Part shown: positions 4,997 to 59,026 of the stretch, in pieces | Layout of the letters: every line of letters starts with the position of its first letter | How positions within the stretch are numbered: the stretch's first letter is position 1 | Origin: Vitrella brassicaformis CCMP3155 | Lineage: Eukaryota; Protista; Chromerida | Assembly (NCBI GenBank): GCA_001179505.1 | Contig: CDMY01000033.1 | Location: 1-64,000, forward strand | Direction: 5' to 3' | Length of the DNA: 64,000 nucleotides | Program-made: the position numbers and the translations under genes | Notes under the pieces: model-generated | The model's input: only the letters and a program-made list of their open reading frames with translations | Database searches by the model: none | What the model was told of the DNA's origin: nothing

Positions 4997-6367
4997 ACCT
5001 CGCTGCGGGCCTTCTGCCGTCTCTCCCCGTCCTCCGTCTCGTCCGTCTCGCCCGGTGGCGGCAGCGGCCGCTTCAATGGGCTCCTCAGGGTGGGGATGGT
5101 GGCAGCAGCGGCAGCGGTCGCAACGTCGGTCTCGGTGGCGGTGCCGAGGGCGGGGTTGGTGTTGTTGGTCGGCTCGGCGCCGGTCTGGGTGGCGGTGGTG
5201 GGGGCGGGGTGGGTGCCCATGGTTGTTGCCCTCCCTTGGATGAGGTCGATGTGAGCGAGGGAATTGAGCTCCTGCTCCTCTGTCAGCCCTGACGTCGGCT
5301 CGTCCCGGCGTGTGTCGTAGGCCGCGAAGATGGCGATCCGCTGGAAGGTGATGTGGGCCCCCCGCTGCTCACTCCCGCCCTGCTCGGTCTCGAAGTTGTA
5401 CACCACGGTCGTGATCCGCCCCCTGCGCTCTATCTCCTCCCGTTTCTCCGGCGTCTTGTACGACTCCGGCCCCTCGTTCCCTCTATGGTCGGTCCGCATG
5501 GTGAACACCTGCCCCACCACCATCCCCTCGGCGACGCGCCAGTCGTGGAAGCGCAGCGATGCGTGGCTGCCGTACACTGTCGTCACCACCCTCAGGGCTA
5601 TCTGGAGGGCGTCCTGGTGCGTCCACACCTCCCGTGGTAGCGGCGGCATCGCGCCCCCCTCCTGGATGGTGACGATGCTGCCGATGGTCACCGCTATCTT
5701 GTCGTCTAGGTCGGTGATGTGGTCCATGGGGATAACGGTGAGGCGCACGGTGGTGTGGGCGAGCCCCACCGCTTGGGCGCCCTGCACCTCAGCGCCGCCG
5801 TGGGGGATCTTGCCGTGGTATACGAGGTCGATTTTGCTCTTGGTCTCCGGCAACTCAGCCTGCATCAGGGGAAGGGAAGGAAAGGAGGGGTGGTCCGTAG
5901 GCGTGGTCTGAGCGTTATTCTCGTGTGCGCGTCTGTGTGCAGTGGTGTCGGCTTATGTTGGAGTACCCGTGGCTTTCGTAGACTCTCAGGTTGGTCAGCT
6001 TCTTGTGCCATCCAGTCTGGATGGACTCAGGCGCCCACTGCAGCTCGAGACGCGTGGTCTGGTCCTCTAGCACGCCATCTATGCGCGGCTGGTTGGGCAG
6101 CACACGCCCGCCGACGAGTGGTGCGGTGAGGATGGTGGTCTTCCCCCGTCGCTTCCACTCGAACATGCCGGTGGAGCACATCGCGAGTTTGTTCTCGGGG
6201 ATCTCGGTAATGGTGTGGTATGAGGGGCCGTAGCTGCAGTATGTGTGGGTGCGGCCGAGCTTCTGCCGTCCGATGGTGGTCTCATGCAGCACGCGGCGCT
6301 GTACAAACCCGAGGGAAAGGTCCGACCGGTGGCACCGGTCGGTCTTGCCGGTGCCGCGCAGCAACAT
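4458..6367 (-). CDS. Hypothetical protein (beta-rich N-terminal region, then Q/P/G low complexity); probably spliced or frame-disrupted
   Basis: ORFs 5915-6367 and 4555-5865 are separated by an intron-like pyrimidine tract ending TGCAG at about 5860. A more protein-like tail (AEAQELEGAALTAAVVDFAKKKKEQQQ) is in another frame ending at 4458. No family recognised. Confidence 0.4.
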
Positions 6368-16885: not shown

Positions 16886-17134
16886 GTATGTATGTGTATC
16901 TGTATCAGGGAGCCGGTTGGTTGGTTACATGGATGGACAGAGAGACACACACATGGTGCATTCAATCGATTGGCGTGTCCATTATGCAAACACAACAAGT
17001 CTGATTTGTTGACACAAGACCGATACTTGAGAATAAGTCCGATTCACACGAGAACGTGTTCAGATTCTGTGAACGACGTGCTTCTGACCCGCTCAGACGT
17101 TCGGTTCGCGCCTGCTGGCACATCCACACATAAA

Positions 17135-17822
17135 ATCCCCGATCGCTGCGCGCCCGCTCCCCACGTCGGCCGTCTCCTGCTGGTCCTGGAGGTGTGGATG
17201 CCGAATGCCGAATGCCGAGTCGCAATGCGATGGTGAGTAACTCTCACCTCGCCTTGCGACAGATCACCGTGAGAAACGCCCCCGGGCCCTGCACAGCTCA
17301 GGGCCTGGGGCAACGCCCAGGCGGAACCTCCGCAGAGGGGAGCTGGCGGGTGGGAAAAACCAAAAGATCATCGACACCACAATGCGCGTCCACACGCTGA
17401 CGTGGACGCGCCATCAACGCGAGCCCGGCATCTGGGCCAAGGATCGCCCGGCGGCTCGCACTCGCGAGCAGGCTGCGAGTGCGAGAGGGAGCCCTCACCG
17501 CTCACGCTGCGCTCGGGGGATCCTACGCCACCGGACGAAACGTCCTCAAGGCTCCGAATCCCCGATCGCTACGCGCCCGCTCCCCGGGTCGGCCGCCTCC
17601 TGCTAGTCCTGGGGATGCGGATGCCGAATGCCGAATGCCGAGTCGCAATGCGATGGTGAGTAACTCTCACCTCGCCTTGCGACAGATCACCGTGAGAAAC
17701 GCCCCCGGGCCCTGCACAGCTCAGGGCCTGGGGCAACGCCCAGGCGGAACCTCCGCAGAGGGGAGCTGGCGGGTGGGAAAAACCAAAAGATCATCGACAC
17801 CACAATGCGCGTCCACACGCTG
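17135..17822 (-). repeat. Tandem array of the YR-element terminal cassette (B-spacer-A-B-spacer-A partial; about 423-bp period)
   Basis: Matches the A and B repeats at 20289-20780 and 28299-28514, with subfamily-specific differences (AAAAGATCATCG; lacks one GAGGGAGTGC). Confidence 0.9.
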
Positions 17823-19544: not shown

Positions 19545-19988
19545 ACACATGCATTTCGCGAACGCGGCGAAAGTGTAGTGAGTTCCCCCAGCCCGACGGA
19601 GGGGAATTTCATGTGTTTAACTGCGACCCCGAAGGAGACTCAGTCATTTATAGATCTAACGGCACGCGTCCGGCGGACCGTCTCTCCCTTCCCTCCCAGC
19701 TCGAGTTCAGGGGATGAACTCGTCATCGTCGTCTGGCTTCTTCCGCTTGCGTGACCGGTGCCCTCCGGCCTTGTCCGTCTTTCTCGTCTTTGCCGGCTGT
19801 GGATCTTCGTCTGCCAGCTGCTTCTGGCGTCCCTTGGCTGGTCGTTTCTCGCTCCGTTGTGGCTGCGCCGGCTGGCTGCGTCGTGTGTCCCTAGGCACGC
19901 TGCCCCACATGGCGCCGTCGCGTCCGAGGGAGTTGTAGAAGCGGCGTGCGGTGTCGAAGGACGGCTTGCCGTACAGGCGCACCATGCT
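19545..19988 (-). mobile_element. Truncated, diverged second copy of the YR C-terminus and 3' UTR
   Basis: Homologous to about 20950-21388 (SMVRLYGKPSFDTARRFYNSLGRDGAMW...DDDDEFIP), with substitutions and UTR indels. Confidence 0.9.
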
Positions 19989-20288: not shown

Positions 20289-20379
20289 ACCGTGAGAAAC
20301 GCCCCCGGGCCCTGCACAGCTCAGGGCCTGGGGCAACGCCCAGGCGGAACCTCCGCAGAGGGGAGCTGGCGGGTGGGAA

Positions 20380-20595
20380 AAAACCAAAACATCATCAACA
20401 CCACAATGCGCGTCCACACGCTGACGTGGACGCGCCATCAACGCGAGCCCGGCATCTGGGCCAAGGATCGCCCGGCGGCTCGCACTCGCGAGGGCAGGCT
20501 GCGAGTGCGAGAGGGAGTGCGAGAGGGAGCCCTCACCGCTCACGCTCCGCTCGGGGGATCCTACGCCACCGGACGAGACGTCCTCAAGGCTCCGA
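20380..20595 (-). repeat. Split direct repeat A2
   Basis: Near-identical to 28299-28514. Confidence 0.95.
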
Positions 20596-20780
20596 ATCCC
20601 CGATCGCTGCGCGCCCGCTCCCCGGGTTGGCTGTCTCCTGCTGGTCCTGGGGATGCGGATGCCGAATGCCGAATGCCGGGTCGCAATGCGATGGTGAGTA
20701 ACTCTCACCTCGCCTTGCGACAGATCACCGTGAGAAACGCCCCCGGGCCCTGCACAGCTCAGGGCCTGGGGCAACGCCCA
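20596..20780 (-). repeat. Split direct repeat B1
   Basis: Repeated at 20289-20342 (partial), 17135-17319 and 17558-17742. Confidence 0.93.
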
Positions 20781-21105
20781 CGTCCCACCTCGCCCGCCGG
20801 GCCGAGAGAAGGGAGGTGCGGTGGTGTGAGGCGTAGGAGAAGATGGAGGAGAGGTGTGGAGTAGAGAGTGACCGGCCTGGTCTGTTTGGTTAGTTATTGT
20901 GTTTTTGGCTGTAATCCCGGAGGGGATCCTGGGGGCCGATGGGGGCTTTGCATGCATTTCGCGAACGCGGCGAAAGTGGAATCAGCCCGAGGGGAAATTT
21001 CATGTGTTTAGCTGTGACCCCGAAGGGGATCGGTGAGTCATTTATTTAGATAGATCTTAACGGCACGTGTCACGGACCGTCTCTCCCTTCCCTCCCAGCT
21101 CGAGT

Positions 21106-22545
21106 TCAGGGGATGAACTCGTCATCGTCGTCTGGCTTCTTCCGTTTGCGTGGCCGGTGCCCTACGGCCTTGTCCATCTTGCTCGTCTTTGCCGGCCGTG
21201 GATCTTCGTCTGCCAGCTGCTTCTGGCGTCCCTTGGCTGGTCGTTTCTCGCTCCGTTGTGGCTGCGCCGGCTGGCTGCGTCGTGTGTCCCTCGGCACGCT
21301 GCCCCACATGGCGCCGTCGCGTCCGAGGGAGTTGTAGAAGCGGCGTGCGGTGTCGAAGGACGGCTTGCCGTACAGGCGCACCATGCTCGCGTCGATCCAG
21401 TCTGCGATGCGCTGGACGAAGTCCCTGGACGCCCCCTGCTCGAGCGCCCACGTCGCTCCTCCCTTACGGAAGGAGTGGGAGGCGAATCGGTCCAGCGGTG
21501 TGCCGCCGAATTCCTGCTGGTTCGCGTCGTGGAGAGCCTTCAGGGCCTTCCTGAGGGAGCTATTGAAGTGGTCGCCCGTCACAGGGTCGTCTCGCCACTC
21601 CCCGGCACTGACGTCCACGATGCGGAAGAGGTGCCCGGACCTCGGGGCCTTCTCCTTCCTGTCCAGGACCAGAACAGGGGAGGCGCATGTGGCTACTTGC
21701 CTCGTCTGGGCTTACAGAAAATCGCGAAGTGTCTGTCCCAGGTTAGGGAAGGCTGGGGGTTGCTCGGGGAGGGGCACAAGCAGGCCCTGTCCGTATGGGT
21801 CATTCTTCTGTTGTTTGACGTGCAGGCGGAAACCCTGGCCTCGCCCGAGGTCCGTCAGGTCGTCCCTCGTGAGTGCTGTCACCTCCGAGATCCGCCTCAT
21901 GCCGAAGAAGGCTATGAGGGCCATGATGCCGTTCCTCGTGGTGCCCAGCGCCCCATAGTTCAGCCAGTAGGGGATGAGCCGCTGGAGCACCTCCACTGGG
22001 AGTGGTTCCTTCGGCCGATACGAGGCGTCCAAGGTGCGGTGGAGCCCCTGCAGGAAGAGGCGCACCTGCGGCTCGGTGAAGGGGGGCGGGGGGTGGTTGT
22101 GCACCTTGTGCCACGCCTGAGTGGCCGACCGCAGCTGCTTCACCTGGGACCAGTGGCGGTCCTTTGCGAAGGCGGCGAAGGCCCAGATGGTCTTCTCGGG
22201 TGAGTCGAGTGGGAGGAATGACGGGAAGTCCTTCTCGGCGCGCTGCAGGACGCCCTCATACGCCTTCTGCGTCGATGGTGCCCAGACCGCCCCGAATGCC
22301 TTCCTGACCAGCTCGGCCACTTCCGACGCGTCGCTCGGTGCTTGGAGGCGGTCGCTTGACGTGCCTTTGACCGTGCAGAGGCACGGGATGGGGGCAGCGA
22401 GGGAGTGCGCCTGCATCTGGGTGGGTGCGATGGTGCCTGTCCCCCTGCAAACTGCGCACACCGGCGATGACCTGAGGGCGCATCCATGACACGGAGAGGG
22501 GAGTGATGAGCGACTGCATCTTGCTTCCTGGTATGCGTGCCGCAC
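21106..22545 (-). CDS. Tyrosine recombinase, two exons with a 57-nt intron at 21659-21715
   Basis: Catalytic set GMRRISE (R), QKND (K), SHSFRKGG (HxxR), IADW, VRLY (Y). The intron GTAAG...GGACAG contains the in-frame TAA. Confidence 0.9.
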
Positions 22546-22648
22546 TCATGCACATCGCCACGCACTTGCCCGGGCCCCTTATCGGTTGTATCATGTGTGT
22601 GTGCCTGCAGGTGGCTTGTCTGCCGCGTGTCCGGGCCATTGTGGCTGT

Positions 22649-22948
22649 NNNNNNNNNNNNNNNNNNNNNNNNNNNNNNNNNNNNNNNNNNNNNNNNNNNN
22701 NNNNNNNNNNNNNNNNNNNNNNNNNNNNNNNNNNNNNNNNNNNNNNNNNNNNNNNNNNNNNNNNNNNNNNNNNNNNNNNNNNNNNNNNNNNNNNNNNNNN
22801 NNNNNNNNNNNNNNNNNNNNNNNNNNNNNNNNNNNNNNNNNNNNNNNNNNNNNNNNNNNNNNNNNNNNNNNNNNNNNNNNNNNNNNNNNNNNNNNNNNNN
22901 NNNNNNNNNNNNNNNNNNNNNNNNNNNNNNNNNNNNNNNNNNNNNNNN
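22649..22948. other. Assembly gap (300 N) between overlapping contig ends
   Basis: The about 880 bp on either side are near-identical (offset 1180 = 880 + 300). Confidence 0.95.
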
Positions 22949-23725
22949 GAGGGGCACAAGCAGGCCCTGTCCGTATGGGTCATTCTTCTGTTGTTTGACG
23001 TGCAGGCGGAAACCCTGGCCTCGCCCGAGGTCCGTCAGGTCGTCCCTCGTGAGTGCTGTCACCTCCGAGATCCGCCTCATGCCGAAGAAGGCTATGAGGG
23101 CCATGATGCCGTTCCTCGTGGTGCCCAGCGCCCCATAGTTCAGCCAGAAGGGGATGAGCCGCTGCAGCACCTCCACTGGGAGTGGTTTCTTCGGCCGATA
23201 CGAGGCGTCCAAGGTGCGGTGGAGCCCCTGCAGGAAGAGGCGCACCTGCGGCTTGGTGAAGGGGGGCGGGGGGTGGTTGTGCACCTTGTGCCACGCCTGA
23301 GTGGCCGACCGCAGCTGCTTCACCTGGGACCAGTGGCGGTCCTTTGCGAAGGCGGCGAAGGCCCAGATGGTCTTCTCGGGTGAGTCGAGTGGGAGGAATG
23401 ACGGGAAGTCCTTCTCGGCGCGCTGCAGGACGCCCTCATACGCCTTCTGCGTCGATGGTGCCCAGACCGCCCCGAATGCCTTCCTGACCAGCTCGGCCAC
23501 TTCCGACGCGTCGCTCGGTGCTTGGAGGCGGTCGCTTGACGTGCCTTTGACCGTGCAGAGGCACGGGATGGGGGCAGCGAGGGAGTGCGCCTGCATCTGG
23601 GTGGGTGCGATGGTGCCTGTCCCCCTGCAAACTGCGCACACCGGCGATGACCTGAGGGCGCATCCATGACACGGAGAGGGGAGTGATGAGCGACTGCATC
23701 TTGCTTCCTGGTATGCGTGCCGCAC
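22949..23725 (-). CDS. Second copy of the YR 5' portion (4 SNPs versus 21771-22545)
   Basis: Same peptide with TKPQ/TEPQ, RPKK/RPKE and IPFW/IPYW differences. Confidence 0.8.
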
Positions 23726-23970
23726 TCATGCACATCGCCACGCACTTGCCCGGGCCCCTTATCGGTTGTATCATGTGTGTGTGCCTGCAGGTGGCTTGTC
23801 TGCCGCGTGTCCGGGCCATTGTGGCTGTCGTCACATTCACGTGCCATGCGCAGTCCCTGTGTGAGTATCATTGTGGCCATCGCCATACTCATGTGTCAGT
23901 CGCGGTTCATGCACGAGGTGCTGTGGCTACCGTCATGATTCCTATGTGACCTGCCGTCACCGCCAACACT

Positions 23971-25167
23971 CTACGACTCGCTGCCCCTCGTGTGTCCGGA
24001 CAGGTAAAGCACGACCATGGGGAACGGGGCGGGTTGGCGAAAGTGCCATTGTGCATCAGACGACTCCTGTGCTTCTGACGCTGTCAGTAGGGTGTTCACT
24101 ACTCGTGCTCCTCGGGCCCAGCTACGCGCGACCTTGAAGCGTGAGTGCCGACTGTAGGCGCTGCGGACGGCCTCTACGCGGTCGCGGTGGCCGACAACCA
24201 CGACCGTCTGACGGTGGTGGAAGAACCACTCCATGGCCGCATCCATGGCCGCCAGCGTCTCGGCGGGGGTGGGTGTGAAGACTGCTGGGCCCCCGGCGTG
24301 CATGCTGGGGCCTCCCTCGGCTGCTGCTGTGTGGTGTTGGGCCGTCAAGGCCAATTGAGGGGACGGGCAGAAGAAGTGGTGCTCGCAGCGGATATGCAGG
24401 CGCCTCTGCAGGGCTGACCACGACCTGGCCGTCAGGCGGTGGGGCACGTCGCTTGACGGCTCGGCCAACCGCGACTGGGCGTCGGCCGCCTGGTTGTGTT
24501 CGCCCGGTATGTGGTGGGCGAGCAGCTGACCCGCGTCCACCGCCCTGAAGAGCTCGCTCAGCACACGCATGGGGCCCGGGAAGGCGCTATGGCGGTGGTT
24601 GACCCAGCCTACTGCTGCCGCGTTGTCCGAGCGGATCAGAATGAGGTGCGACCCCCACTCTCTCGCCCATCGCTGGGCCGCAAACAGGATGGCGAGCAGC
24701 TCGCGGAAGTTGATGGAGGTGTGGTGGGGTGACAGCCGTGCTGACCACCTCCCACTGATCGACCGATCGCCCCACACGGCGCCCCACCCTGCGTCACTGG
24801 CGTCCGTGTACACGATCCGGATGGCGGGGTCGGTGGGGAGGGGGCGGGATGGGTGTTCCGCCAGGTGCGGGAAGAGCTGGAGGGGCCGCATGGCCGCCTC
24901 CCAGAGGAAGGCTCGGCCCTCGGCGGACCACTGCAGCTGGCGGCTGGGTGGAGTTGGCGCAGAGAGGAGGGCACGCCACCAGGCCACGTCTATCCACATG
25001 GGGCTATCCGGGGGAACCTTGACCGTCGCCCCCTGCAGCCGCGGGTAGGCGGAGCCCGCCTTCCGCCGCAGCTCGTCGTATCGGCGCGACGTCACCGTCC
25101 AGGCGTTGCGCAGCTTATGGGAGCCGAGGGGGTGCAGGATCGCCACGTGGTTCAGCCGACCTGTCAC
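23971..25167 (-). CDS. DIRS-type RNase H followed by a degenerate methyltransferase-like domain
   Basis: YTDASDAGWG, INFRELLAI, IRSDNAAAV, HIPGEHNQAADAQSR; the downstream region occupies the position of the DIRS MT domain. Confidence 0.88.
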   Translation of the reverse strand: MTGRLNHVAILHPLGSHKLRNAWTVTSRRYDELRRKAGSAYPRLQGATVKVPPDSPMWIDVAWWRALLSAPTPPSRQLQWSAEGRAFLWEAAMRPLQLFPHLAEHPSRPLPTDPAIRIVYTDASDAGWGAVWGDRSISGRWSARLSPHHTSINFRELLAILFAAQRWAREWGSHLILIRSDNAAAVGWVNHRHSAFPGPMRVLSELFRAVDAGQLLAHHIPGEHNQAADAQSRLAEPSSDVPHRLTARSWSALQRRLHIRCEHHFFCPSPQLALTAQHHTAAAEGGPSMHAGGPAVFTPTPAETLAAMDAAMEWFFHHRQTVVVVGHRDRVEAVRSAYSRHSRFKVARSWARGARVVNTLLTASEAQESSDAQWHFRQPAPFPMVVLYLSGHTRGSES

Positions 25168-26234
25168 CGCAGCAGCACCTGCAGGGGTATCTCGTCGCTG
25201 GTGCTTCGGTGGCTCTCGAGCTCGTCGAGTGAGGCGAGGGTGCGTCGACGCTTCGCCTCCGTGATGGAAATCATGCCCGTGAGTGAGTCGAAGACGATGC
25301 GTCCGAACTCCAGGGCCTGCTTGGGGCCCTCTGCCTTGCCCTCGTGCTCTTCGACGCCGCTATCGGCAATGCACGTCTGGAGCACCTGCTTGCCCTGGGC
25401 GCAGACCTCGAACGACGGCCCTATCACCAGCCAGTCATCGATATAGCAGAGGAAGGCAGCATCTGTCCGTTGGGACACGGCCTCTCTCACGGCCTCCATG
25501 CTCTTGACGAAGAGATATGGTGCGCTGCTGACCCCGAATGGGAGGTAGCGGTAGCGATAGAACTGCTGCGTCTGCGGATGTTGGAAGCCCAGCAGGTCGC
25601 ACTCTTCCGGCGCCACCGGCAGGTGCAGATACGCGTCTCGCACGTCGATCTTGGCCATGTAGCAGCCCCGCGAGATGGAGGCTATCGTGTCCGCCACTGA
25701 TGGCAGTGTGAAGTGGGGGGTCAGGAGGGAGGCGTTGAGGCCCGACGCCCTGCAGTCGAGGATCAGACGGACCTTCGTCTTGGTGTCGCCTGGGTCTCTC
25801 TTCTTCTCCACCGCCCCAAGCGGGTTGACGATGAAGGGGCGGTGGGTGCATGGCTCGACGAAGCCCTTGGTGATGAGACGCGTGAGTTCCGCCAGCACCG
25901 CCTCCCAGAAGTCGAAGAGCGAGTCGTAATTGCCCCGGTGCAAGGGTTTGAGTGGTCGAAAGATGAGAAGATCGACGCCTCTCTCCCAGTCGCTGACGAC
26001 CGTCTCATTGACGCCCCACGCCCGGGCTCTGGGTGGCCGCAGGCGGCCGCCTGCCGTCCAGGCTGAGATGCGGTGTGCTGTGGGCGGGTGCCACGACGAC
26101 CGCCCCAGCCCTTGAGCGAAGTTTTGGATGTGCATGCTGCTTTCCAGTGATTTCCGGAGTGCATCGTGCGTGCCGTCTGTGTCGTTGTTTGAGCCCGTGG
26201 ATTGCTCAGTCGATTGGATGGAAACTGAGGGCAC
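25164..26234 (-). CDS. DIRS-type reverse transcriptase, frameshifted from RNase H at about 25165
   Basis: KVRLILDCR, KIDVRDAYLHLP, YRYLPFGVSSAPYLF, YIDD. Confidence 0.93.
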   Translation of the reverse strand: MPSVSIQSTEQSTGSNNDTDGTHDALRKSLESSMHIQNFAQGLGRSSWHPPTAHRISAWTAGGRLRPPRARAWGVNETVVSDWERGVDLLIFRPLKPLHRGNYDSLFDFWEAVLAELTRLITKGFVEPCTHRPFIVNPLGAVEKKRDPGDTKTKVRLILDCRASGLNASLLTPHFTLPSVADTIASISRGCYMAKIDVRDAYLHLPVAPEECDLLGFQHPQTQQFYRYRYLPFGVSSAPYLFVKSMEAVREAVSQRTDAAFLCYIDDWLVIGPSFEVCAQGKQVLQTCIADSGVEEHEGKAEGPKQALEFGRIVFDSLTGMISITEAKRRRTLASLDELESHRSTSDEIPLQVLLR

Positions 26235-26380
26235 AGTGGACAGGCAGACGAGCCCGCATTCGTGTCATTAAAGCATAAAGCAATCGGTGTCTCGCCCCAT
26301 GCAGAGTCTCGCTGACGCACGACGACTGGCTCGACTGAGCTATTGGGCAATGCTACTCAGAGCCTAACAGATGTCGCTGA

Positions 26381-28208
26381 CTACAGGCCCGTGCGCTGCC
26401 TCTTACTCTGCCGCGGGGCGTTCGGGCAGTCTTTGCGCAGATGGTAGGCCGTGATGCCCAGTCCCTCGCAGACGGCGCAGGAGAGGATGATCGGCCGCGG
26501 GCACTTCGTGACGTGGTGCCCCTGGAGCTCTTTCGGGTCCGTGATCTTGCCCTGACGTGGGCAAACCCACACACACACACACGCAGCGATGAGACCAGGT
26601 GACGGTCTGCCTGTGCTGTGGTGCCTTGCGTACCTGGATGAGGTACTGCAGGCAGTTGTTGCATGAAAGAGTCTTGTCCACCGTGCGGCACGGGACTGCC
26701 ACCGGTTGGTGCACCGGGGGTGCCGCTGGCTGATGTGCCGGGGCGGCGGGGGGGCGCTGCTGGCCCGAGTGAGAGCTGGCCGCTACCGCGCGATTGACGA
26801 ATGCGGGGGCACTGCAGGTCAGACAGGGGAAGACAAATACATACACATACAATACACACCCTCATACACACTTCCATGCACACACACACACACACACCCC
26901 ACCCCACCCACCCCTCCCTTTTTCTCTTTCCTTACCCGTGTTGTGCCGATGCTGCTGCTGCTACTGCTGCTGCCGATGGTGCGGGTGGGGGTGGCTGTGC
27001 GGGGCTGAGGTGTGTGGGCTGGCGGATCTGCTGTTGTAGGATGCTGATCTGGCTGGTCACCTGCCGCAGTTCGCCGCTCAATGCCGGGACGGCGCGCGCG
27101 ACGAGGTAGAGGGGTGGCGGGGGGGCCACCCGCTGGCCAAGGTGCTTGGCCAGGGGCTCGCGCAGAATGTCGTCGACGCCGGGGAGCTCGAAGTATCCCC
27201 TGCTGCCGTCCCCCCCCCTAGCACCGGCATCTTGGCCTCCTGCGCCACGTCCTGCATTGTCTTGACGAATCGATGCACCTGCAGGTAGATCTGGCGGTCC
27301 TCTCCCTCGTCTGCCGTCGCCGTGTTGTCCTTCACGGTCATGAGCGCCGTCCACAGCTGTGATGAGGTGATGTCCTTCAGTTGGATGCGGGTGCTGCCCC
27401 CTTTGATGGTGAGCTGGTCGTCCGCGCCCCTCTCGAACGAGAGAGACGGAAGGGGGAGCTGGTCGGCGAGGGCGGTCACCATGCGCTGCGCCAGCTTGCT
27501 GCCCTCGGCGAATGGGGATTGGATCTGCTTGGTGAGCTGCTGCTGCGCCGCCTCGAAGGTCCCTATCCGCTGATCCAGCCCGCCCAGCCGCCCGCCGATG
27601 GACACCATGCCCTGCGTCATCTGTTGCTTCAAGTCGTCGAGCTCCCTCGCCAACATCTCCAACTTCTGGCACCGCTCGATGTCTCCATCCGCCCCTCCGC
27701 CCCCTCCCCCCAGATCCCCCCGCCCCCTCCCCTGCTGCCGGTCCTCCTCCTGGATCTCGTCCTCTCCCTCCTCCAGATCTACCTCTACAGCCTCCGCCCG
27801 CCTCGACTTTTTCTTCTTCTTTTTCTTCTTCTCGGCCCCGTCCTTTGCCTTGGCCTTGGCCCTGGACGCTGCCGGTGTCCCCGCGCCCCCCTCGCCCTGG
27901 ATCTCCTCATCCTCCATGTCGGCTGCGATGTCATCGTCCGCGAAGCCCTGTCGCCTCTGGGCGTCGATGATCTCGTCCTCTATGTGGGAGATCTGGTCCT
28001 GCAGCAGCTGCTCCAGCTCCTCCTCGCCGAGATCGAGGTCGCGCAGCTGGTTATTGAGGGCGGCCTTCAGATGCTGCCCAACACGCACCCGCTGGCCAAG
28101 ATCTTCCAGATCACCCAAGCTAAAGAAGGCCGGTAGGTCGCCGGTGTCGACGCCAGACCAGTCGAAATTGGCCTTCTTGAATTTGAAGGCGTTGCGGGTT
28201 CTCGCCAT
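26381..28208 (-). CDS. Gag-like protein, 3 exons (28208-26936, 26811-26634, 26551-26381), two C-terminal CCHC-like knuckles; one indel in a G9 run at 27210-27218
   Basis: ATG directly downstream of A1. Introns GTAAG..CTGCAG (124 nt) and GTACGC..GTCAG (82 nt) join in frame to give CNNC...HHVTKC and CAVC...HLRKDC. Confidence 0.82.
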
Positions 28209-28298: not shown

Positions 28299-28514
28299 AA
28301 AACCAAAACATCATCAACACCACAGTGCGCGTCCACACGCGGACGTGGACGCGCCATCAACGCGAGCCCGGCATCTGGGCCAAGGATCGCCCGGCGGCTC
28401 GCACTCGCGAGGGCAGGCTGCGAGTGCGAGAGGGAGTGCGAGAGGGAGCCCTCACCGCTCACGCTCCGCTCGGGGGATCCTACGCCACCGAACGAGACGT
28501 CCTCAAGGCTCCGA
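28299..28514 (-). repeat. Split direct repeat A1 (5' end of the YR element)
   Basis: Near-identical to A2; similarity ends abruptly at 28514. Confidence 0.95.
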
Positions 28515-57997: not shown

Positions 57998-59026
57998 GGC
58001 GAGACGCAAACACAGCTGACGAGAAGAGGACAGAGGTGTGTGTGTGTGAGTGCATCTACTCGGCATCTGTGTGCTGCCTACCGGCGAGATGTGTCGAAAA
58101 GAATCCTATGAGCGATGGCCTCTCTATGGCCTCTGTCAGCCGAGGCTTGCTATCGAGGAGGCCGACCTCCGCAGGGCACTCACGGAGTGCAATTCGCTAT
58201 AGAACACGCTAATCCATTCATCGAAGGGCGAGCTTATGAGCTCGCGATCTGCGGGGTGTTCCACTGATTCCATTCATGGCAGGCCAGGCCGGTTGGTCAG
58301 AGGGGACCACATCGACGCGAGTGACGTCAGCGACGATGAAGAAGAAGCAAGCAGCCGCAGGCAGCCGACAGACAGTCACATGCGTCGCATGGCGTCAGAT
58401 GCTGCATTGCCTGCCATTGGTTCATTCTGTAGGACATGCTGGCAGCCATTCCATTTATCCATTGAGTCACTGACTGTCAGGATCGACGGCCAAAAATGGT
58501 GCATGCCTTCTCTAACCATTTGGCTCCATGTTGTGTGTCCCTCTCTGAGCGCCCTTCGGTGCCTTCAGCCACAACACCTCCCGTCAGCTGCTGTGGTTGG
58601 AGGCACCTGCTGCTGTCACATGCAGCCATGAGGAAGGAAGACACATGAGTGAGTGAGTCGGGGCCCACCCACAAGGCACCACACCCGGTTGGACACCCAC
58701 CCGCCTTAGGCGGCCCTCATCTCGTCTCGTCTCGTCTCGCTGCATCTCCTCTCCATCCAGGCTCTCTACATCAGCTATCAAACACTCTGCCTGCCTCTCC
58801 CTCCCCTCCCGGCCACCACCCACCGCCCTCCCGCGCCTGCAGGCCTATACAGCACATCACCACCGGCCCACGACACATTGACAGTAGCCAAGACACACGA
58901 ATTCACCAACCCACTCCCATGCACTGCACCACAAATCGGTCGACACACTCCACTGCAAAACGACCCGAAGAACAAAACCCGAACGAGGAAGAAGCAAGAG
59001 CCAAGTGCCAAGGGCCAATCAGCTAT

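Follow-up and report, generated by a model that had tools for sequence, protein, structure and literature searches.

Spliceosomal introns within the gag-like gene of a rare DIRS-order retrotransposon in Vitrella brassicaformis

Retroelements are expected to lose introns when they copy through processed RNA, and introns that are retained are therefore informative. Vitrella brassicaformis is a photosynthetic, free-living relative of the apicomplexans. A 64-kb stretch of contig CDMY01000033.1 from strain CCMP3155 (the window, i.e., the whole stretch of DNA that was analyzed) carries a retrotransposon, read on the minus strand, whose gag-like gene appeared in a first-pass annotation to be interrupted by two host-style spliceosomal introns. 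The locus raises the question of whether these segments are truly spliced, whether they belong to the element, and which RNA served as the template for its copies. We consider it probable that they are genuine spliceosomal introns in the gag-like gene, that the host element is a DIRS-order retrotransposon with a low copy number, that the introns are the element's own, and that they have been passed on via unspliced RNA.

When read directly from the sequence, both segments had the coordinates, lengths, and boundaries first ascribed to them (coordinates are window positions, features are on the minus strand unless otherwise specified, and a slash marks an exon-intron boundary). Intron 1 (26812-26935; 124 nucleotides [nt]) has the donor G/GTAAGG, starting at 26935, a branch-like CTGAC, and the acceptor tail CTGACCTGCAG, which ends at 26812 and is followed by T. 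Intron 2 (26552-26633; 82 nt) has the donor CAG/GTACGC, starting at 26633, and the acceptor CCCACGTCAG (GTCAG), which ends at 26552 and is followed by G. Neither length is divisible by 3. The GT microsatellites noticed in both introns were found as (GT)9 at 26879-26896 in intron 1 and (GT)7 at 26568-26581 in intron 2; GT/CA runs of at least 5 units occur 35 times in the window. The published genome gives a total intron length of 16.41 Mb over 22,817 genes, i.e., a mean intron of roughly 120 nt, and introns are present in 94.75% of genes, with a median of 6 per gene (PMC4501334). The two introns, together with a candidate of 182 nt described below, are thus of the size of Vitrella introns.

The gag-like gene starts with an ATG at 28208, and its first part (27219-28208) is an open frame with no Pfam match. 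A protein search with this N-terminal open reading frame (ORF) returned a single match, a Vitrella gene model (here P0001), which is 90% identical over the shared part, while a protein atlas search with gag yielded nothing usable. The open frame runs to a G-run (27210-27218) that, by comparison with P0001, has 9 Gs versus 10 in the second genomic copy. A DNA-like sequencing run (X3, see below) agrees with the assembly at this site and contains no additional base. The gag of the window copy is frameshifted upstream of both introns by this one-base shortfall, and its continuation in the shifted frame (26936-27209) aligns to P0001 residues about 150-244 and ends with AQH plus GG at the intron 1 donor.

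If left unspliced, this frame meets a TAA within the donor GTAAG of intron 1. Removal of the 124 nt allows it to continue (GG/T) through exon B (26634-26811), which has 59 codons after the split codon and ends with CNNCLQYLIQ, and removal of the 82 nt allows it to continue into exon C (26381-26551), which opens with GKITDPKELQGHHVTKC, includes CAVC-x8-HLRKDC, and ends at a TAG stop (26383-26381). Reading the frames exon by exon therefore gave the single frame that had been proposed, with the motifs CNNC-x17-H-x4-C (knuckle 1) and CAVC-x8-H-x4-C (knuckle 2). Intron 2 splits knuckle 1, leaving its C-x-N-C half on exon B and its H-x4-C half on exon C, where knuckle 2 also lies. Both introns must be spliced out for gag to be read through to two C-x2-C...H-x4-C motifs, as the first-pass annotation had held. 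Only doubly spliced RNA allows the C-terminal motif domain to be read, given that a stop codon within the donor of intron 1 ends the unspliced frame.

Further insight into the motifs comes from relatives of the element. At least four DIRS-like families are present in the genome, i.e., that of the window copy (C33/C863) and three others (C499, C929/C508, and C1057) with 38-42% identity in the reverse transcriptase (RT). All three end their gag with the same motif pair, and the first C-x-N-C...H-x4-C motif is uninterrupted in each of them. The upstream C-x-N-C of these families (CVNC, CLNC, and CDNC) has its counterpart in the CNNC near the end of exon B, and one H and four C columns, i.e., five ligand columns, are invariant in the alignment of the four Vitrella families. 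The gag of C1057 is a single uninterrupted ORF with CVNC-x14-H-x4-C and a second, shorter C/H motif, and its alignment with exon C starts at the very first residue of that exon (GK; E 0.011). This alignment and the four-family columns indicate that the spliced join restores a motif that is contiguous elsewhere, and that intron 2 is specific to the family. In C499 and C929, both motifs lie on one exon, and upstream of it is a frame break with a CA/GT microsatellite, which is probably an intron.

Direct evidence of splicing was sought in four sequencing runs, which were compared as assembled contigs. Runs X3 and X7 were taken as DNA-like on account of their long contigs and even depth, and X1 and X5 as RNA-like on account of their splice joints, contig totals of 25 and 52 Mb, and uneven depth. 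In X5, depth is 60-115 on gag versus 2-8 on pol, and X1 lacks any pol coverage. The genome paper placed DNA and RNA under one study (PMC4501334), and X3 and X5 come from the same sample.

The joint expected from excision of intron 2 (26550 to 26633) skips 82 nt bounded by CT..AC on the plus strand, i.e., GT..AG on the strand of the element. A 331-nt X1 contig spanning 26364-26550 and 26633-26776 carries this joint with 0 mismatches, and in X5 the joint has a depth of 98.7, with a depth of 0 within the intron. The joint is absent from X3 and X7, and an X3 contig runs unbroken over 25703-26736. Splicing also takes place at the homologous site of the second genomic copy, which lies on contig C863: in an X5 contig with a depth of 10.4, exon C is followed across the joint by 26 letters specific to C863 (the reverse complement of the end of its exon B). 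Intron 2 is thus excised exactly by the host spliceosome, and this holds for the sense-strand transcripts of the window copy and of the C863 copy.

Intron 1 required a different approach, given that its donor lies within a masked CAG repeat (26869-27003) where joints could not be listed. The summed X5 depth of the two contigs is 109 (98.7 + 10.4) at both 26496-26533 and 27057-27075. In the bin between these points (26726-26882), X5 averages 60.4, compared with predicted values of 59.8 if coverage ends at 26811 and 99 if it extends up to the mask; in the same bin, X3 averages 83, which corresponds to full coverage. This bookkeeping of depths indirectly supports that intron 1 is missing from the RNA-like contigs, and, together with the public gene model, that it too is spliced out. 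RNA junctions, which had been proposed as the check on the introns, are accordingly present for intron 2 as a joint in X1 and X5 with none in X3 and X7, and intron 1 is reached by depth.

The gene model in question, P0001, is annotated as protein-coding ("unnamed protein product") and maps exactly to C863 as four blocks and three introns. Two of these introns, G/GTAAGG...TTCAG and CAG/GTACGC...GTCAG, are the homologues of introns 1 and 2, respectively. The Vitrella annotation was made by Augustus with RNA sequencing intron hints (PMC4501334). A protein search with the gag piece that ends at the intron 1 donor returned no matches, and thus no transcript-derived protein spans the intron 1 junction.

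The unit that hosts these introns is a retrotransposon of the DIRS order whose termini are PAT-like or Ngaro-like, since its split direct repeats enclose RT, a weak match to RNase H, and a tyrosine recombinase, which bears out the retrotransposon identity initially assigned. Between the repeats, the order is gag-like gene, RT ORF, RNase H ORF, and tyrosine recombinase, and the termini have the layout A1-[genes]-B1-A2-B2 that characterizes PAT-like and Ngaro-type elements. The 5' terminal repeat A1 (28299-28514; 216 nt) is 98.6% identical to A2 (20380-20595), i.e., the two diverge by 1.4% in the window copy. The 3' terminal repeats (20289-20780) consist of B1 (20780-20727), A2 (20595-20380), and B2 (20342-20289), of which B2 abuts a gap of Ns; the 54-nt B repeat flanks A2, and its two units (20289-20342 and 20727-20780) are 100% identical.

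The RT ORF (25164-26234) matches PF00078 (8.4e-16; 58.7 bits, cut-off 29.6). The RNase H ORF with its C-terminal extension (23971-25167) lies downstream of RT as expected and matches PF17917 with 23.3 bits, slightly below the cut-off of 24.8. A methyltransferase-like domain after RNase H is a trait of PAT-like and DIRS1-like elements, as opposed to Ngaro; the extension found here, of about 160 amino acids, has no Pfam match. The catalytic C-terminal part of the tyrosine recombinase (HSFRKGG..., ...RLYGK; 21106-21658) matches PF00589 (Phage_integrase) on 21106-21618 with 30.1 bits against a cut-off of 27.1, and families C499 and C1057 match it too. No integrase or protease family was reported in the Pfam scan of the large ORFs of the element. 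Relatives of the RT outside Vitrella are at most 31% identical, and so the element has no sequence-based placement among DIRS1, PAT, and Ngaro.

When the whole assembly (72.7 Mb, 1064 contigs) was searched at the DNA level, two copies of the element emerged, namely the window copy and the one on the 14.9-kb contig C863. The C863 copy keeps both introns in place, with a 27-nt duplication inside intron 2 (109 versus 82 nt). It is truncated at its 5' end at a point matching window position 27705, inside gag, where the adjoining flank is unrelated; in addition, 968 bp of its RT are deleted, and exons B and C contain indels. A search for intron-less copies, which had been suggested as a test of the introns, found none, whether among the assembled contigs or in the DNA-like runs, and the segments are present in each of the two family copies.

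In pol (RT, RNase H, and recombinase; 778 codons), the two copies differ by 40.5 synonymous and 35.5 nonsynonymous differences, which gives a pS (synonymous differences per synonymous site) of 0.070 and a pN (the nonsynonymous equivalent) of 0.020, with a ratio of 0.29 (binomial p 2e-7). Given that dead duplicates drift toward a ratio of 1, the copies probably descend from a lineage that was still selected for transposition while it bore the introns. In view of this purifying selection on pol, passage of the introns through replication, from unspliced RNA, is plausible. We postulate that the introns would belong to the element rather than having been gained after its death, that new copies would be reverse-transcribed from unspliced RNA, that the spliced RNA would serve as the messenger for full-length Gag, and that a further alternative splice may give Gag-Pol.

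Several observations weigh against this interpretation. The intron 1 junction was never observed directly, and X1 and X5 have no run type on record; we infer that they are RNA. The motifs fail against the Pfam zinc-knuckle models: the knuckle exons gave no significant match, the only one being zf-CCHC_2 (E 0.21; 11.9 bits, cut-off 27), and their spacings are x17 and x8 instead of the x4 of the retroviral-type CCHC (C-x2-C-x4-H-x4-C). Between the copies, gag shows dN/dS (the ratio of nonsynonymous to synonymous rates) of 0.8-1.6 on few sites and no purifying selection. Intron positions differ between families, with an intron-free gag in C1057, and family-specific positions also fit late, local intron gain. 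Both copies are defective, through the G-run frameshift in the window copy and through the 5' truncation and RT deletion on C863; with two copies only, transmission by retrotransposition is presumed rather than observed. The other families have one or two copies each, so that a test of intron inheritance across many copies is impossible in this genome.

In one alternative, the introns are real but were acquired in place by a long-resident, no longer mobile copy, with the intron-rich host genome as their source, and the second copy arose through DNA-level duplication, in which case nothing would follow about the replication template. We regard this as unlikely, albeit worth serious consideration. 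It would account for a family of only two copies, both broken, for family-specific intron positions alongside one family with an intron-free gag, and for a gag that is unconstrained between the copies, and the host is intron-rich (94.75% of genes, median 6). However, pol diverged under purifying selection (pN/pS 0.29, p 2e-7), which is unexpected for dead duplicates. Moreover, A1 and A2 of the window copy have diverged by 1.4% versus a pS of 7% between the copies, and the C863 copy stops inside gag at an unrelated flank. The introns are also not introner-like: apart from microsatellite and CAG repeats, they have no match elsewhere in the genome, and an introner-like origin was rejected for this reason.

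It is very improbable that the locus is a domesticated host gene of retrotransposon origin that was given introns like other genes. Such a gene would be expected to be transcribed and spliced, and the depth of the gag contig in X5 is indeed high; purifying selection on pol between the copies and the public annotation as protein-coding would fit as well. Nevertheless, both copies carry disabling lesions, the window copy is still flanked by intact split direct repeats, the full set of retrotransposon domains remains, and gag shows no constraint. Finally, it is scarcely credible that the segments are microsatellite-bearing insertions or gene-prediction artefacts that restore the frame by chance, for although both contain (GT)n runs and decayed copies could lead a predictor to bridge frameshifts with false introns, precise GT..AG excision occurs in RNA-like contigs of two studies and in both copies despite lengths of 82 versus 109 nt, the excised form is not in the DNA-like sets, and the join restores a motif that three related families carry in one piece, so that this account is already contradicted for intron 2.

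Beyond the two introns, a further splice may connect gag to pol. The third intron of P0001, A/GTAAGAGG...CTTCAG, joins gag to the RT frame from a donor 26 nt before the gag stop. Its homologue in the window is a candidate alternative intron of 182 nt (26225-26406; A/GTAAGAGG ... CCCTCAG/T) that would fuse gag to RT with the join in frame. This splice has no contig support, and X5 is continuous over 26140-26495. The X5 depth steps near 26100-26250, from 60-115 on gag to 2-8 on RT and RNase H, which hints at an abundant gag-only transcript, contig depth being a poor measure of abundance.

We tentatively put forward a broader hypothesis, which we hold to be possible rather than probable, in which host splicing acts as an expression switch of the Vitrella tyrosine-recombinase retrotransposons and replication proceeds from unspliced pre-mRNA. 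The unspliced RNA would be the copying template and would encode only a Gag cut short within the donor of intron 1 and lacking the metal-binding domain. The doubly spliced RNA would encode full-length Gag, and Gag-Pol would come from use of the alternative donor, which lies 26 nt ahead of the gag stop.

The families may have in common a splice that leads from the end of gag into pol. The end of the C1057 gag (5775-5790 of the C1057 sequence) has a strong donor-like GGTACGTAAGG overlapping the stop codon, for which a simple search found no in-frame acceptor. When in-frame GT..AG pairs were enumerated for the gag intron of C929 and for the gag-pol junction in the other families, many candidates resulted, of which only C499 973-1208 was reasonable; we do not claim shared intron positions between families from these candidates. 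In the second copy of the C929 family (C508:32641-33106 and 58555-58988), gag is split into two halves that lie on one strand but are separated by about 25 kb, and this break coincides with the position of the presumed gag intron.

Other features of the window element concern mainly its recombinase and its termini. The N-terminal part of the recombinase (21716-23725) is separated from the catalytic part by a candidate intron of 57 nt (21659-21715; T/GTAAGC ... GGACAG/G), whose boundaries were read from the sequence and which contains an in-frame stop; in families C499 and C1057, the recombinase gene runs without interruption. The N-terminal part also contains a copy of a repeat across a run of Ns: an 880-bp recombinase stretch occurs twice (21769-22648 and 22949-23828; 99.5%), on either side of a 300-N gap (22649-22948). 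This repeat most likely represents redundant contig ends at a scaffold gap rather than a real duplication. The stretches 17054-17822 and 19548-19988 hold more A/B repeat units, in tandem with a period of about 423 nt, and a second fragment of the recombinase 3' end (91% to 20951-21387), which lies downstream of the element, with N gaps between. These units and the fragment may represent either a tandem array or another, partial copy. In addition, an X5 contig with a depth of 4.7, whose shorter side is 27 letters, skips 84 nt at 24000-24085 with GT..AG on the plus strand; this thinly covered joint may reflect a spliced antisense transcript.

Intron-bearing elements with a tyrosine recombinase had been thought to be reported only sporadically. 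Precedents do exist, and they are wider than that claim implied: transcripts of the Volvox element kangaroo-1 are cited as containing introns (PMC1636488). Kangaroo-1 of Volvox carteri and PAT-like elements, which are tyrosine-recombinase retrotransposons of the DIRS order, share with the Vitrella element the A1...B1-A2-B2 termini and the order of gag, RT/RNase H, and recombinase. The hosts differ, i.e., a green alga for kangaroo-1 and a chromerid alveolate here, and the introns described here cut the C-terminal metal-binding motifs of gag.

DIRS-1 of Dictyostelium discoideum also belongs to the DIRS order and has RT, RNase H, and a tyrosine recombinase, whereas its terminal repeats are inverted and it has no natural introns. 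The complementary DNA of a tagged DIRS-1 could keep an unspliced test intron, depending on the intron site (PMC7192593); in contrast to the introns of Vitrella, that intron was artificial and was spliced before productive retrotransposition. Penelope-like elements similarly keep spliceosomal introns after retrotransposition, which has been called highly unusual among retroelements (PMC8557442). They differ in having an unrelated RT clade, a GIY-YIG endonuclease, and target-primed integration. Moreover, the functionally characterized introns, those of Penelope and Chlamys-3_cRei, lie in the 5' untranslated region (PMC8557442), whereas those of Vitrella lie inside a gag domain.

The scheme proposed for Vitrella resembles the division of labor between unspliced and spliced RNA in retroviruses and some long terminal repeat (LTR) elements. 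In retroviruses and in LTR elements such as copia and Ogre, unspliced RNA is the replication template and spliced RNA is the messenger for some proteins. There, splicing removes or joins whole ORFs, whereas in Vitrella it concerns two small introns in gag, one of which splits a single motif.

The published table of transposable elements lists 0 bp of DIRS elements for Vitrella (PMC4501334, supplementary file 2), and the DIRS-like elements described here are a class that was overlooked in the published annotation. This element is rare and both of its copies are crippled, and it is without practical importance for the host. Elements that keep their introns and show RNA evidence of splicing nonetheless bear on which RNA is reverse-transcribed and on how a mobile element can use host splicing to set its protein ratio. 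The four families, which differ in the presence and position of gag interruptions, form a small system for intron turnover in which age can be estimated from the terminal repeats. If the expression switch is real, a retrovirus-like division of labor would have arisen independently in the DIRS order, and the family-specific intron positions would document how introns were gained or lost within mobile elements that can be dated.

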